Of a stretch of DNA of 11,946 bases, positions 1,330 to 11,946 are shown one piece after another. The notes beneath the pieces are model-generated. The model did no database searches and was not told the origin of the DNA. It saw nothing but the letters and a program-made list of their open reading frames with translations. The first letter of the stretch is position 1; each line of letters opens with the position of its first letter. Source of the DNA: Paraphysomonas bandaiensis (Eukaryota; Protista; Chrysophyceae); the NCBI GenBank assembly GCA_965644295.1, contig CBFFRP010000579.1, positions 1 to 11,946 on the forward strand, written 5' to 3'. Made by a program: the position numbers and the translations under genes.

Positions 1330-1810
1330 GGTGTTCCGGTGTTTGGCTGAACTGTATTGGTGATTTCATTAATTGTGTCTTTGAAGCCTGCTCTTTCGAT
1401 TCCCTGCTGAAATACCCTTTATATGCATTATTATGTTCGGGTTCATAACATATATGGACAACACACTTCAAGTCATGCAGTAAAATAATATTCTGCGCTG
1501 TACGAGGTTACATTTATGTTGCTGCGTAATAAATAGGTTATGAAGTCAGTGTCTGCAACTTAATCGGCCACATTCTATACAGAGGATTCAGTTTATATAA
1601 CAGCTCCTAAAATAAAGTAGCAAACTAGCGATCATGAAATAATACAGACTTTTGTAAACGTTAATGAAAAAGGAATAATATTTCAATGGGATAAATTAAA
1701 TTTATTCTGTGCCTAAGACCTGTGAAGGTGAAGTAGCTGTGTAACTTTAACACATATCGGGACTTACGTTGACATATAATGGCTAAAAGAATAAATGTGG
1801 CGCACTAGTA

Positions 1811-2029
1811 GTGAATGCCTTACTATTAGCAATAGGCGTTTAAGAGTCAGAACTATTTTAACTAACTAGTGCTTTACTCTGATGCCCTACTACTTTACAC
1901 TACGAAAGCTGCTTGTGCGTCACCGAAAGCACCAAGGTGCAGTTACTTTAGCTCTATCACTCAAAGCAAACGCAGTAAGCAAGCAGAATGTTGATACACT
2001 TGACATCTGCTGACTTAAGGAATTTTGAG
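1811..2029 (-). repeat. Repeat copy A (inverted relative to B and C)
   Basis: The reverse complement of 1886-2016 begins AAGTCAGCAGATGTCAAGTGTATCA, identical to 2958-2982, and similarity continues to TAGTAGG. Copy A has an internal deletion relative to B and C. Confidence 0.9.
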
Positions 2030-2047
2030 CCTTTAATTAAGTGTGGT

Positions 2048-2221
2048 GCACAAGCAGATTTCGTAGCGTTATATAGATATATAGTAGGATATGAGAATTT
2101 GTACTAGTTAGTTACAGGTCGAAGTCTATCTAGCTTGACTAATTTTCATCTAGCTACATACCAGGTGCTGATTCTCGACGCCTATTATATGCTAATAATA
2201 AGACTTTCATGATATTATAAG
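2048..2221 (+). repeat. Repeat copy B (partial, direct with C)
   Basis: GCACAAGCAGATTTCGTAGCG...TAGTAGGATA...GAATT...TTAGTTA...ACGCCTATT...TAATAAGACTTTCA..ATATTATAAG is collinear with 3056-3239. Confidence 0.8.
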
Positions 2222-2633
2222 TACGTGTGAGAGCTGCCGATGAACATGTCGTCCTTCAGTGTTTTAAGAGGTGCAGTTAAACAGGGGGACGCCCTTTGTG
2301 ATAGAAGTCCGTGAAGCTTGAGGGAGGATCAGAGTTATGTAGATGGGAGGATAGTGTTCCGAGGGAGAGTGAGATGGTGCGAGTTAGAGGCGTAGAATCT
2401 GTAGAGTCTCAGGGTGCTACTGACTGCAGTGTATAAGTTGGACGTAAATAAAGCTGACGGAGTCGTCTACGTTGGAGGCTTGAAAGTGTAAAAGCGTAGG
2501 AGAAGGGGTCATACGTACAGCTGTGATTCTATACTGAGGCACCATCCGGTCCGAAGTGGAGGGACTTATGGGTAGTGTGGGTGGTAGTTGGAGGTTGATT
2601 GTGGAGTGAGCTATTGACTTGCTGGGTCAGGAT

Positions 2634-2813
2634 TAAGTCGAGGTAATACCAAAACCTGGTAAAGCGATTTCACCAGGTTTCATATCTAAGTATTGAGTTA
2701 TTATTTTACTGTAATTTGTATCTATAAGTCGAGGTAATACCGAAACCTGGTAAAACGATTTCACCAGGCTTCATATCTAAGTATTGAGTTATATTTTACT
2801 GTAATTTGTATCT
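2634..2813 (+). repeat. Tandem duplication, 2 x ~90 bp, each unit containing a hairpin
   Basis: TAAGTCGAGGTAATACC...GTAATTTGTATCT at 2634-2723 and 2725-2813; about 3 substitutions and one 1-nt indel. Confidence 0.95.
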
Positions 2814-2944
2814 GAGAGGTTAAAGATAAAGAAAAAGTCGCAAGTATAGTTGTTATTAACAGTATTTAATGGGCTAACCTCAAGGGCATCCGAGGGCTTG
2901 GGCTGTTTGCTGAAGTCAATCATCCAGGCTGTTTACCTTAAGAA

Positions 2945-3245
2945 CTCTAAAACCCTGAAGTCAGCAGATGTCAAGTGTATCATCATTCTGCTTGCTAACT
3001 GTGTTTGCTTTGAGCGATAGAGCTCGAGTGGTTGCACCTTGGTGCTTGCGGCGACGCAGAAGCAGCTTCTGTAGCGCTAAATAGTAGGATAATAGAATTA
3101 GGGTTAGGGTTAGGGTTAGGTTAATGCTGATTAGTTATGGGTAGAGGTCTAACTAGTAGGTCTAGCATTCAACTAACCACTATATCGGAATGAGGTTTTA
3201 ACGCCTATTGCTAAATAATAAGACTTTCAATATTATAAGACATGT
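2945..3245 (+). repeat. Repeat copy C (longest copy; carries a TTAGGG insertion)
   Basis: Aligns inverted to copy A and direct to copy B. Confidence 0.88.
3098..3123 (+). repeat. Interstitial telomeric sequence (TTAGGG)3 TTAGG TTA
   Basis: Read directly; same motif and same orientation as the terminal array. Confidence 0.95.
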
Positions 3246-3831
3246 CATTCACTAGTGGCGTCCAATGGTCTAGGATGAAGCGATAAAAATATATTGCATA
3301 TAGGTACCTCTGTGCTGCATGTAGACATGTGTGTATGTATGTGTAGCCTAGCAGACACTGTCTTAGCTCAGAGAACATGGGGCTTCTCGTAATTTAGTAC
3401 ACGAGGCTTTTTTAAAACAATCTAGCCACTTTATAAAACGATATACTCCAACAATCACCAGATCACCAGACATGAGAAGGAAGGTAATGATTATTTAGCT
3501 TATCTGGAAAGTGAACACTTATATTTCTCAAGGATTATTTTTCAGAAAATATCACACACCGCCAAATGGTGTGAGCGCAATATTTTCCTTGCTTTGCCTA
3601 TCATGTGTGGCTTCAGGATAGCAACCAAGCGCAACTGCAACGTATAGGAATACAACGGATTTATATATATCATATACATGCAACAGGTATGCATAGCAAT
3701 GATTTTAGTGCATAGCTGCATATTCGAAACCACCTTCCACTTCAGTAAATTAAATATAACGGTACGTAACAATGATGACGCACGCCATGCGTAACTAATT
3801 TAACATCAAATATATTAGTTATTATCGACAG

Positions 3832-7312: not shown

Positions 7313-10300
7313 ATGAAGAAACCTTCACCAGAGAAAAGCGAAAGAGAGTGCAAAGAGCTGCAACGAACTCATGCAATCATAAGAGATCTTGAAGATAAAT
7401 TAGCAGCTGAAAAGCAGAAGAATCAAGAGCTGGAGAATGAAGTACTGCAACTCAAGTCGTGCTTATTGCAAATGTGGTCTCACGATCAACACAACAGCGA
7501 TGAGGGATTATTCACCGATCCCTCTGGTGGATCATCCGCTATGCTAACTGATGACTCACAGGAGAATGTTGGCTCCAGAGCTCCATTGAGACAGAAATCG
7601 AAGAGTGTGATTGACAGTGGAGTTGTCGAACATTTACGTATACACAAGGAAGAAATTACGATTAAGGTTTTCCTGTTGCAGTACGTCCTTCACTACATTG
7701 ACACCTTGACAGGAGAGGGTGGGTATGGGAAGCTTCGGAATAGTACACAAAGCAATGTTCGAAGAGAGTATAGTGGCAGTCAAAGTATTTATTTCAAGGG
7801 AAGTTGATATTAATAGAGAAATTGTAACGATGTCCAAAACTAAAGGTCAACCCCATGTGTTGGACCTGCTTGGTACGCTGTGAACTGCACAGCTGTTTTT
7901 ATGACTGACGAGTACTGTTGTTGTGCAGGTGTCGTTATTTCAGAAGAAGACCCTTACAAACCCCCCCAGGTTAACATTTGCATGTATTACGGATATATGC
8001 TGGCGTCGGAAATATGGTCATGCATATTTACGGTTATTTTTGCATTGGTTTTATAATGCTTATTCTATCTTCCAGGTTGCTTTGGTTATGAAGTTTATGG
8101 CAAATGGCTCTCTGCAAGATATTTGCTACCGGGACTCCCCTATGTATCACTCACATATTACCAATGAAACGAAAGTCAAGTTCGCTTATCAAGCTGCAAG
8201 AGGGGTTCTGAGTTTACATCAACTGAATATCATCCACCGTGATCTGGCGTGCAGGAATCTTCTTGTGGATGACAAGATGGATGTTTATGTAGCAGATTTT
8301 GGGTTTGCTCGACTGAAGCATATTGCGATGTCGAAGGAGTTTACTCAAACAAAGATAGGGCCCGTTCGATGGGAAGCCCCAGAATCTCTCGTAAACAAGG
8401 AGTTTTCTGAGAAGACGGATTCGTTTTCATTCGGAGTATGTTTATATGAACTCATTAGTGGCAAGCAGCCCTGGGACTCAATGCCTACTCCAGCTATGGT
8501 GATAGGTAACGTACTGAATGGCCATAGAATGCGCATTCCCATAAATTGCGATCCTGTACTTGCCGAACTCTGTGAGCTATGCTGGGCCCATGATCCTGAC
8601 GTGCGCCCGAATTTTGATGTCCTTGTACGTACACTTGGAGATCGATACAGAAAGGTATTACAAGATAACCGTGAAGTCAATAGAAAAATTGACACGGTCG
8701 AGTTCATGATCAGCGGCTGTAATGTAATAAAGTTTCCATTTGTTTTGAAAGATGGAAATAAGGCGAAGAAGCCAAAGCAACGCTTTCTGCACTTGACGTC
8801 GGACCTCAAGAGTTTGTTGTGGAGCAAGACCATAGAACGAGGACTTGAGATGAAAGATGTCACCGATATTCTAGTTGGCCAATCTACAAAAAATTTCAAG
8901 CTATTCGGGCCCGGTGGGTTGGGTCCATCATCGGCTGCCTGTTCCTTTTCCATTGTCACAGTGAGCCGGACACTTGATATAGTTTGCGAGAGTTCACATG
9001 CGAGGGACCAGTGGGTATGGGGTCTTAGATTTCTGCTTGCTCGTCAGAGAGAAGACAGTTTATATAGTAGGGTGATGATAAACCTTCGCCACAACTGGTC
9101 GATTTTACCTCGCGATATTACGTTGAGTTCATTTGGAAAGAAAGCGAAGGAAGATTTCGAGCTGACTCCGCAGATATTGAATGGTATTCGCCATGTGGCT
9201 TACAACCTCCAACGCGGTGAAATTATGATTAAATTCACTACCCGTAAAACTCACGCTCGTCATGTGTGTCTGTCGGAGGATTTAACGTGTATAACATGGA
9301 GTTCAGAAGAGGACGGGCCGGTCAGAAAAGGACGCAGCAAGAGCATTCTAGTTGATGAGATAGAGCGGATAGTACATGGTAATCAACCGAAACTACTAAG
9401 TGGTAGTGCTCGCATGGTTGCCGCAGCAGCTCAACTGTCAGAATCGCTGACGCTCATTAAGTCTCCTCCGACGATCAACCAACGACGAGAAAGAAAATGG
9501 GGCGTTGAGTCAACAGATGATCGACACATTGCGCACCAAACCCAAGCTACACATACGATGCCTTCCTCAGTAGGAATCTCAACATCCAGACGGGATAGGC
9601 GACTTTCAGTTTCCTCCAACAAAGATATAACTTATGATGATAAAGTCTCACACTCACAGAGGAATCCGACATCTTGGTCGCAACAGGTGCAGAGTTTTTT
9701 TCCTCCTCTTCCTTCTCTAAAGCGAGAGAGATCACTGGAAACGGGGCAGGGGTATGGGGGGGACGCGGGAGGTTCTATTGTGTCGGAGGACTCCTCTGGA
9801 GCCGAAAAAGAAAGAAATGATGATGAGGAGGATTACCAACTCTGTGTGTCATACTTAGGGACTGACGGGAGGACGCTTTTGGCAATTCGCTGCCCCAACA
9901 AGGACGCGTTGGACTTGTGGACCGAAGGCTTGACAGCTCTAATTGTTGTTCGAAAGATGTTCAGGCATTTCCAAATGCCCAATTATAACAGCCCTTCTGA
10001 CTTTGATGGCAGTGTGGTACGTGGTCGTCGCTGTGTTTCCCGTTATCTTATTCTCTATATCTTTGCATTTTGGCAACAGGTTGCGCATGTGCCTTCCAAT
10101 CGGAGCTGTATTGTAGATACCCTGCTGTCATCATCCGAGGATATAACTTCGAGAGAAACTACCAGAGTTACAGAGCAGTTATCTTGCGATGAGAAAACTC
10201 CTCACCAATTAGTAACATCTGTGGTGTCTGATGACGAACACAAACTGCTCCCGATGCTCACACCCGGAGAAATACAAATTCCTATACTTGATGAGAAAGA

Positions 10301-10760: not shown

Positions 10761-10860
10761 TATTTAATTTGTTTGTGTTATGTGTGCTTGTATGTAGCAT
10801 GGCTGCGTATCATCTAATTGACGTAGGTTGTAAATTATAATTGCGATTATTACTATTCCA

Positions 10861-11074
10861 TTAGGGTTAGGGTTAGGGTTAGGATTGTTTGGGTTATACG
10901 CTGTCCCCCGATAGCTCCTTACCCATTTGAGGTTAGGGTTATACGCTGTCCCCCGATAGCTCCTTACCCAATTGAGGTGTGGATCTGTTTAACAATCAAA
11001 TTTAAGCCAATCAAAAAAAGGGTTAGGGTTAGGGTTAGGGCTCGCATGGTTGCCGCAGCAGCTCAACTATTCGA
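10861..11074 (+). repeat. Telomere-proximal mosaic of short TTAGGG tracts and unique spacers
   Basis: TTAGGG tracts at 10861-10883, 10931-10941 and 11019-11040. Spacers include a 45-bp-period duplication (10891-10933 / 10936-10978), an A7-ended segment (to 11019) and a kinase-derived 29-mer (11040-11068). Confidence 0.93.
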
Positions 11075-11925
11075 TTAGGGTTAGGGTTAGGGTTAGGGTT
11101 AGGGTTAGGGTTAGGGTTAGGGTTAGGGTTAGGGTTAGGGTTAGGGTTAGGGTTAGGGTTAGGGTTAGGGTTAGGGTTAGGGTTAGGGTTAGGGTTAGGG
11201 TTAGGGTTAGGGTTAGGGTTAGGGTTAGGGTTAGGGTTAGGGTTAGGGTTAGGGTTAGGGTTAGGGTTAGGGTTAGGGTTAGGGTTAGGGTTAGGGTTAG
11301 GGTTAGGGTTAGGGTTAGGGTTAGGGTTAGGGTTAGGGTTAGGGTTAGGGTTAGGGTTAGGGTTAGGGTTAGGGTTAGGGTTAGGGTTAGGGTTAGGGTT
11401 AGGGTTAGGGTTAGGGTTAGGGTTAGGGTTAGGGTTAGGGTTAGGGTTAGGGTTAGGGTTAGGGTTAGGGTTAGGGTTAGGGTTAGGGTTAGGGTTAGGG
11501 TTAGGGTTAGGGTTAGGGTTAGGGTTAGGGTTAGGGTTAGGGTTAGGGTTAGGGTTAGGGTTAGGGTTAGGGTTAGGGTTAGGGTTAGGGTTAGGGTTAG
11601 GGTTAGGGTTAGGGTTAGGGTTAGGGTTAGGGTTAGGGTTAGGGTTAGGGTTAGGGTTAGGGTTAGGGTTAGGGTTAGGGTTAGGGTTAGGGTTAGGGTT
11701 AGGGTTAGGGTTAGGGTTAGGGTTAGGGTTAGGGTTAGGGTTAGGGTTAGGGTTAGGGTTAGGGTTAGGGTTAGGGTTAGGGTTAGGGTTAGGGTTAGGG
11801 TTAGGGTTAGGGTTAGGGTTAGGGTTAGGGTTAGGGTTAGGGTTAGGGTTAGGGTTAGGGTTAGGGTTAGGGTTAGGGTTAGGGTTAGGGTTAGGGTTAG
11901 GGTTAGGGTTAGGGTTAGGGTTAGG
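11075..11925 (+). repeat. Telomere, perfect (TTAGGG)n, ~141 units + TTAGG (851 nt)
   Basis: Uninterrupted TTAGGG array with the G-rich strand running 5'->3' towards the end of the sequence, as expected for a right chromosome end. Confidence 0.99.
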
Positions 11926-11946
11926 AGCAATACGTAACTGAACGAA
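11926..11946 (-). other. Untrimmed Oxford Nanopore ligation adapter (technical artefact)
   Basis: AGCAATACGTAACTGAACGAA is the reverse complement of TTCGTTCAGTTACGTATTGCT, the 3' end of the ONT adapter top strand. Confidence 0.96.

Follow-up and report, generated by a model that had tools for sequence, protein, structure and literature searches.

The window analysed in this work is an entire 11.9-kb contig (11,946 nucleotides; G000:C579) of the 62.5-Mb genome assembly of the chrysophyte Paraphysomonas bandaiensis, and one end of it is telomeric. Near this end, two almost identical 9-nt sequences stand directly before runs of the telomere repeat TTAGGG. The first, ACTATTCCA (tag 1), is located at 10852-10860 and is followed by TTAGGG from 10861; the second, ACTATTCGA (tag 2), is located at 11066-11074 and is followed by the terminal array from 11075. 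The two tags share eight of nine bases in the same register relative to TTAGGG, and the eighth base is C in tag 1 and G in tag 2. A first-pass annotation, made from the letters of the window, had pointed out this match, and its coordinates and letters were confirmed. It had offered two explanations: a second template switch that used ACT microhomology to return from a captured piece of a kinase gene to the original junction, or a telomere-seeding motif related to the flank of the telomerase RNA template. Our analysis favours the second. Both 9-mers are very probably footprints of telomerase, left when it started on a non-telomeric 3' end and copied the linker beside the template of its RNA.

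The match also stood out against shuffled controls, on which the first-pass annotation had staked it. When the window was shuffled, ACTATTCNATTAGGG with up to two mismatches was found 0.13 times on average, and two matches were reached in 1 of 200 shuffles, indicating that the two matches before TTAGGG are not due to chance.

Reading towards the telomere on the plus strand, the unique chromosome end (10787-10854) is the final part of a dispersed repeat and is broken after ...ATTATTACT. At least eight further copies of this repeat were found, with 81-86% identity to the window. They run ...ATTATT|ACTTGCTG or ...ATTATT|ACATGCT..., having AC(T) in common with the window and then diverging from it; therefore, the ACT at 10852-10854 is chromosomal. 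It is also a 3-nt microhomology to the telomerase RNA linker described below. When the genome was searched for an allele or an intact version of the window's end, none was found; only the last 65 nt recurred, as the dispersed repeat.

Tag 1 leads into the first telomere tract (10861-10893), now buried, which consists of three perfect TTAGGG repeats and then of degenerate TTAGGA, TTG and TTTGGG. Two pieces of a subtelomeric repeat family that starts with TTATACGCTG... come next. Piece 1 (10894-10933) comprises the first 40 nt of the family and ends at ...GAGGT, the GGT of which overlaps the following repeat; piece 2 (10939-11019) comprises the first 81 nt and is cut off at a run of seven A. Between them stands a single telomere repeat (10934-10941), TAGGG and then a TTA that could equally be assigned to the start of the element. 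A second short telomere tract of 3.5 repeats (11020-11040) follows, its G at 11040 being ambiguous with the start of a 29-nt copy of kinase sequence (11040-11068). This copy matches positions 9408-9436 exactly and in the same orientation, and its donor lies within the coding region of a plus-strand gene with a kinase and a PH domain (PK_Tyr_Ser-Thr, 2.6e-46; PH_12, 8.6e-15). The 29-mer ends in ...CAACT, and its ACT (11066-11068) is shared with tag 2, as previously annotated. Behind tag 2, the terminal telomere array (11075-11925) contains 141.8 perfect TTAGGG repeats and extends to the physical end of the molecule.

The remaining letters (11926-11946) are non-biological. They are an A-tail plus GCAATACGTAACTGAACGAA, a sequencing adapter remnant that marks the true read end and that we take to be the ligation adapter of Oxford Nanopore Technologies. 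Identical adapter letters (A plus GCAATACGTAACTGAACGAA...) follow the telomere at the contig ends of C135 (L010/L058) and C325 (L048). Because adapter remnants follow telomeres there, these two contig ends and that of the window are physical molecule ends, and the assembly is untrimmed. Two of the three adapter-bearing telomeres stop at ...TTAGG before the A-tail.

The junction motif across the genome

The 9-mer ACTATTCNA followed by two repeats (TTAGGGTTAGGG) occurred 44 times in the genome, and its reversed control did not occur. The variable base was G in 42 of the 44 copies, the C at 10859 in tag 1 being one of the only two deviations. Among 30 loci that were fetched, the flanks upstream of the motif and those after the repeats were unrelated between loci, and most of these loci lay within large contigs as short interstitial tracts with 2-5 repeats. 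The first-pass annotation had proposed that a motif shared by many junctions would support seeding, and that a duplicate specific to one end would support template switching. The presence of the 9-mer before TTAGGG at 44 or more unrelated places, together with a G at the second junction where the supposed donor has C, spoke against an end-specific duplicate and in favour of seeding.

A census of tract starts was performed with tracts of at least three repeats in all six registers, using a 75% sample for each. It gave ~85 real tract starts. About 38 of these began with at least 4 nt of the motif, or 64% of those in the TTAGGG register and ~45% of the total. The remaining starts, about half, were untagged and in other registers, in agreement with direct pairing of those ends to the template. 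A search for tags of at least 5 nt plus two repeats yielded 58 matches in a 75% sample, and its control yielded none. The apparent tag lengths formed a ladder from 4 to 16 nt, and every tag was a suffix of CACCCAAACTATTCGA. Past 9 nt, each added tag base matched in ~70-85% of loci, compared with 25-30% expected from composition. Because these matches far exceed chance, the tag part upstream of 9 nt was either copied or selected as pairing. The tagged loci total about 80 in the genome, and they occur at true chromosome ends, inside long terminal telomere arrays and at internal sites.

One internal site could be compared with its empty counterpart. A foldback element copy on contig C419 contains a 27-nt block, CCCAAACTATTCGA plus TTAGGGTTAGGGT, that is absent from the copy in the window (3030-3215). 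The C419 copy is in turn free of an untagged tract present in the window copy, making the two diverged copies reciprocal empty sites, paralogous and not orthologous. Since the paralogous empty site lacks the block, the block was inserted whole, and at C419 the tag was clearly copied.

The untagged interstitial tract of the window, (TTAGGG)3 TTAGG, is located at 3098-3120 inside a foldback or terminal-inverted-repeat element (~1803-3256), and the tagged tract of the C419 paralogue (L028) sits 24 nt from the corresponding position. Several further tagged tracts (L008, L017, L020) abut ends of the same element family, a pattern that suggests the family is break-prone. The centre of the window's element holds a 91-nt unit in two tandem copies with 95% identity (2634-2813).

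A candidate telomerase RNA gene

The full tag sequence beside a short, template-sized repeat (1.67 repeats) was found at one locus in the genome, on contig C144. It reads ...ACACCCAAACTATTCGA|TTAGGGTTAG|ATGCATCC..., or, extended beyond the template copy, ACACCCAAACTATTCGA|TTAGGGTTAG|ATGCATCCAGAGAATGC.... The candidate telomerase RNA gene at this locus is single-copy, carries template plus linker, and lies on the minus strand at G000:C144 ~108,498-108,805. Its 10-nt template, CUAACCCUAA (nt 73-82), corresponds to 1.67 C-strand repeats, of which 4 nt serve for alignment and 6 nt are copied. The linker, UCGAAUAGUUUGGGUG... (nt 83-98), follows directly 3' of the template. The first-pass annotation had suggested that TSGAATAGT be looked for beside the template of a candidate telomerase RNA, and TCGAATAGT was indeed present immediately 3' of CTAACCCTAA at this expressed locus of ~300 nt. 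Its idea of a telomere-seeding motif that pairs with the template flank was thus borne out by the genome-wide motif and by the C144 source locus.

The C144 locus is transcribed as a discrete unit. Two marine plankton metatranscriptomes from different studies contained discrete contigs at 1300-1579 (280 nt) and 1283-1590 (308 nt) of L031 (C144). The flanks were empty in these metatranscriptomes, save for a 29-nt scrap with two mismatches at L031 1604-1632 in one run. A polyA-selected run covered the neighbouring protein gene up to 1283 and not the C144 RNA, and a culture transcriptome spanned the region, with the 64-nt intron of the neighbouring gene removed. Across the template and the linker, the metatranscriptome contigs, which are from Illumina data, matched the source sequence without differences. 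These results are consistent with a non-polyadenylated RNA of ~300 nt whose template lies 62-72 nt from the 5' end. An (ACAT)n microsatellite of more than 350 nt is located at L031 1720-2100, ~130 nt upstream of the 5' end of the candidate gene.

The predicted fold of the C144 RNA (z = -2.3) contains a 10-bp helix that closes the core (nt 29-38 with 189-198) and a hairpin at nt 54-72 that ends 1 nt 5' of the template. This predicted hairpin is a candidate template boundary helix. The 18 nt of linker that separate the template from the next hairpin are predicted to be single-stranded; U8 and A-rich strands are present at nt 135-175, and a 3' three-way junction is predicted at nt 200-308. As modelled, the C144 RNA would fold like a telomerase RNA. 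Rfam returned a weak Telomerase-vert core match on the correct strand (15 bits, with a gathering score of 70; E 0.26), which was gone when a narrower segment was searched and is only a hint. Of the strain variants in this RNA, C201U leaves a G-U pair in place and G227C disrupts a predicted pair; they are too few to test the fold. Five metagenome contigs with CAT+template+TCGAA were considered as relatives and rejected, as they had no homology past the 18-mer and their number was about that expected by chance. A gene with the TERT RNA-binding domain is present in the genome at C426:461912-462433. A literature search found a stramenopile telomerase RNA candidate proposed only for Blastocystis and none described for diatoms or chrysophytes, so that the C144 candidate is apparently undescribed in the literature searched.

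The C144 sequence 5' of the template was also found in a telomere. On contig C591 (L062 minus strand, ~2345-2255), the telomere array reads CTATTCGA, ten repeats, TTAG, ATGCATCCAGAGAA and then GGGTTAGGG.... After TTAGGGTTAG, the ATGCATCCAGAGAA segment matches exactly and in register the 14 nt on the 5' side of the C144 template. It corresponds to read-through past the template boundary, into the loop of the hairpin upstream. Tags are also present within the long array of this chromosome end, as GGGTT|ACTATTCGA|TTAGGG and GGGT|TATTCGA|TTAGGG. Sequence from either flank of the C144 template thus adjoins telomere repeats in register: more than 70 loci carry the 3' linker, and C591 carries 14 nt of the 5' side. 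No other finding argues more strongly for use of the C144 RNA as the telomere template in vivo.

Three further observations concern the linker and its copies. At L059 (C146:322324-322343, minus strand), ACCCAAACTATTCGATTAG is followed at once by unique DNA; it comprises a 15-nt linker copy plus four template bases and is apparently an aborted telomerase event. At C208:125941-125975 and C214:90096-90130, a variant tag ...CC(C)AA(A)CTA|TTAGGG without CGATT was found, which may have arisen by slippage from one ATT of ACTATTCGATT to the other. For GGGTTAGATGCAT, a third match was found at C433:390786; the reversed control also gave 1 match, and this one may be due to chance.

Origin of the tags and history of the chromosome end

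We propose that a DNA end that finds no pairing in the 4-nt alignment part would be positioned on the linker instead, paired over 0-7 bp. In the first round of reverse transcription, linker plus template would be copied, giving (CACCCAA)ACTATTCGA plus TTAGGGTTAG, and later rounds would copy the 6-nt repeat only. We infer that TERT is the enzyme, in which order the events took place and where the primer physically sits.

Applied to the window, this scheme would give the following history. The chromosome would have broken in the dispersed repeat (...ATTATTACT-3'), and its terminal ACT would have paired with AGU of the linker. Telomerase would then have added ATTC(C)A and repeats (10855-10893, since degenerated); the ATTCCA at 10855-10860 would have been copied from nt 83-88 of the telomerase RNA, with C for G at 10859. 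Two truncated pieces of the subtelomeric family may then have become attached (10894-10933 and 10939-11019), with one repeat between them, and 3.5 repeats would have capped these pieces (11020-11040). The end would next have copied 29 nt of the kinase gene, which lies 1.6 kb further in (11040-11068). This patch was copied from DNA, because it has the same (sense) orientation as the donor gene. The last four bases of the patch, AACT, match the linker, and the apparent tag length is 10 there; the ...CAACT-3' end would have been paired through AACT to AGUU of the linker. Telomerase would have added ATTCGA (11069-11074), again a copy of nt 83-88, and 142 repeats would have followed, up to the physical end where the adapter starts (11926). 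The first-pass annotation's switch at ACT, guided by microhomology, is retained in this history, with telomerase RNA as the partner; the jump to the original junction is not.

Several points weigh against this reading. The C at 10859 mismatches the candidate telomerase RNA, in which G is expected; an old mutation of the decaying tract, misincorporation or an error of the consensus could each account for it. The transcript contigs give no strand, exact ends or abundance for the C144 RNA, and its binding by TERT is putative. The pseudoknot of the U-rich and A-rich strands is a putative one, and a metagenome scan found no homologue of the C144 RNA, so that covariation supports none of the helices. 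Because the tag itself served as the query for most tagged loci, the ladder above 9 nt comes partly from a biased sample; the TTAGGG starts of the six-register census and the search with tags of at least 5 nt are less biased sources. Finally, the contig is just 11.9 kb long and retains its adapter, and its end may rest on few reads.

Four other explanations were weighed. According to the first, the tag and the repeats are the 3' end of the RNA of a telomere-targeting retroelement, for example an endonuclease-less Penelope-like element or a long interspersed nuclear element (LINE) with a tail of telomere repeats, and most of the loci are copies extremely truncated at the 5' side. In its favour, seven copies of the subtelomeric family are preceded by the tag plus 2-5 repeats. 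The family has ~19 copies in the genome, all of which start directly after telomere repeats and have variable ends capped by TTAGGG. The long copies continue ...AAAAAAAGTAAG... for 0.7-2.6 kb. The sole long open reading frame (ORF) of the family encodes 358 aa (L051:2920-3996, C-strand) and has no Pfam match, and a reverse-transcriptase ORF sought in the 2.6-kb copy was not found. Moreover, the family attaches equally to long untagged arrays, and the upstream sequence shared by the tagged loci is never longer than 16 nt in more than 70 loci. The sole locus that extends the tag is the single-copy RNA gene of ~300 nt with its 10-nt template, whose other flank is also telomeric. A retroelement origin of the tags is thus quite improbable.

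The subtelomeric family showed some other features. The distal 600 nt of the 2.6-kb copy on C573 are a dispersed repeat resembling a long terminal repeat (LTR). A diverged version that starts with TTATAGGCTG... is present on C591 (L062), and other copies are at L033-L041 and L051-L054. In three of these loci, L051 (C573), L052 (C119) and L053 (C596), telomere arrays of 197-572 repeats lie internally and give way to non-telomeric sequence; these contigs may have been joined chimerically in the assembly or may contain interstitial arrays of very large size. The 87-nt TTATACGCTG... element was also considered as the 5' part of the telomerase RNA, reached by read-through, and was rejected, the C144 gene having ATGCATCC... 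5' of the template.

A second explanation is that 3' ends invaded the C144 gene or another tagged locus and copied it as DNA, by break-induced or microhomology-mediated replication, and that telomerase extended the product later. The sense-orientation kinase 29-mer is a DNA-templated patch at this very end, and interstitial tagged tracts could act as donors. However, copying from DNA would continue into ATGCATCC after TTAGGGTTAG, which was seen once only (C591), and nearly all loci go on with perfect repeats. Entry at graded positions, with 0-7 nt paired, also fits the alignment of a primer on a single-stranded RNA, and we consider that DNA copying has little chance of being the source of the tags.

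The template switch of the first-pass annotation is a third explanation. Here, after the kinase 29-mer, an ACT-guided switch back to the junction at 10852 would have re-copied it, producing an end-specific duplicate of the type made by fork stalling and template switching (FoSTeS) or microhomology-mediated break-induced replication (MMBIR). The 8/9 match, the common register and the shared ACT are in agreement with it, and serial short templated patches do occur at this end. The copy, however, carries G and the supposed donor C, the 9-mer with G stands before TTAGGG at 42 other places with unrelated flanks, and an RNA source with G exists on C144; a switch back to 10852 is accordingly very improbable. 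Least credible of all is an artefact of assembly or of nanopore base-calling at the starts of telomere arrays, for which the short, untrimmed contig and a C/G difference that could be such an error might be cited, since the same 9-16 nt recur at dozens of short interstitial tracts within large contigs and Illumina metatranscriptome contigs reproduce the source sequence.

Copying of the RNA linker by telomerase thus remains the preferred explanation, and it turns a junction that seemed to have been copied twice into an ordered history of break, healing, element attachment, DNA-templated patch and re-healing. The footprint offers a route from sequence to the telomerase RNA of a stramenopile lineage. 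It also provides an in vivo record of ~80 events of where non-telomeric primers are placed on the RNA, reaching as far as 16 nt past the 3' edge of the template; such placement is otherwise studied in vitro. As a tentative and rather unlikely extension, the 18-nt linker could be a dedicated 'healing template', used once per event for priming on almost any 3' end. If so, telomerase patches would be a routine route of double-strand-break repair in this lineage, with ~80 fixed events that are mostly interstitial, and the tag would be a natural barcode of every break touched by telomerase.

With regard to the general gene content, the genome contains at least seven silicon-transporter genes, and a search of the genome for chlorophyll a/b-binding, fucoxanthin-binding or light-harvesting-complex genes found none. 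This content is consistent with a colourless silica-forming stramenopile and less so with a photosynthetic diatom.

Comparison with known systems

Telomere-attached, endonuclease-less Penelope-like retroelements (Athena and Coprina) were reportedly described by Gladyshev and Arkhipova in 2007. The TTATACGCTG... family of the window (10894-11019) resembles them in its constant start after G-strand repeats, its variable distal truncations that are recapped, and its long ORF on the C-strand. It differs from them in the lack of a reverse transcriptase in the 2.6-kb copy and in the LTR-like distal 600 nt. On sequence grounds, the family is only a candidate member of such elements, and the tag does not appear to belong to it.

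The 29-nt kinase patch, and possibly the subtelomeric pieces, resemble the products of MMBIR, FoSTeS or polymerase-theta-type repair, being short templated copies with 1-4 nt of microhomology. The two 9-mers differ from such products in that their template would be RNA and the switch not one from DNA to DNA.

De novo telomere addition, or chromosome healing, occurs in ciliates, yeast, Plasmodium and human terminal deletions. In these systems, as proposed here, telomerase extends non-telomeric 3' ends directly, with a few bases pairing with its RNA, and the half or so of the tract starts that are untagged and in other registers resemble the classical additions. The difference lies in the tagged starts: classical additions begin within the template, whereas ~45% of the tract starts in this genome carry bases from beyond the 3' boundary of the template. 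The term 'chromosome healing' is cited in work on vertebrate interstitial telomeric repeats (PMC8537989).

The closest known case is found in vertebrates, in which interstitial telomeric repeats flanked by retrotranscribed telomerase RNA (TERC-ITS) have been described (Nergadze et al. 2007, PMC2246262; Sola et al. 2021, PMC8537989). These are rare, with 41 loci in 22 species, and are built differently: the RNA-derived pieces are 25-98 bp long, come mostly from the small Cajal body RNA (scaRNA) and pseudoknot domains, and are mostly in the orientation opposite to the repeats (PMC2246262, PMC8537989). Just one of them, in Xenopus, is accounted for by copying of sequence next to the template (PMC8537989), and it alone resembles the loci described here in this respect. 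The tagged loci described here are like TERC-ITS in that repeats flanked by a piece copied from telomerase RNA were inserted at a break in one step, with microhomology at the junctions, and one-step insertion is backed here by the paralogous empty site. They are unlike TERC-ITS in number, with ~80 loci in one genome, and in structure, since the pieces are 4-16 nt long, always contiguous with the template and co-oriented with the repeats, where the vertebrate ones stem from distal domains and are usually inverted. In addition, the loci described here also occur at true chromosome ends and inside telomere arrays. The comparison suggests that insertion of telomerase patches at internal breaks, which is rare in vertebrate evolution, can be common in a protist.

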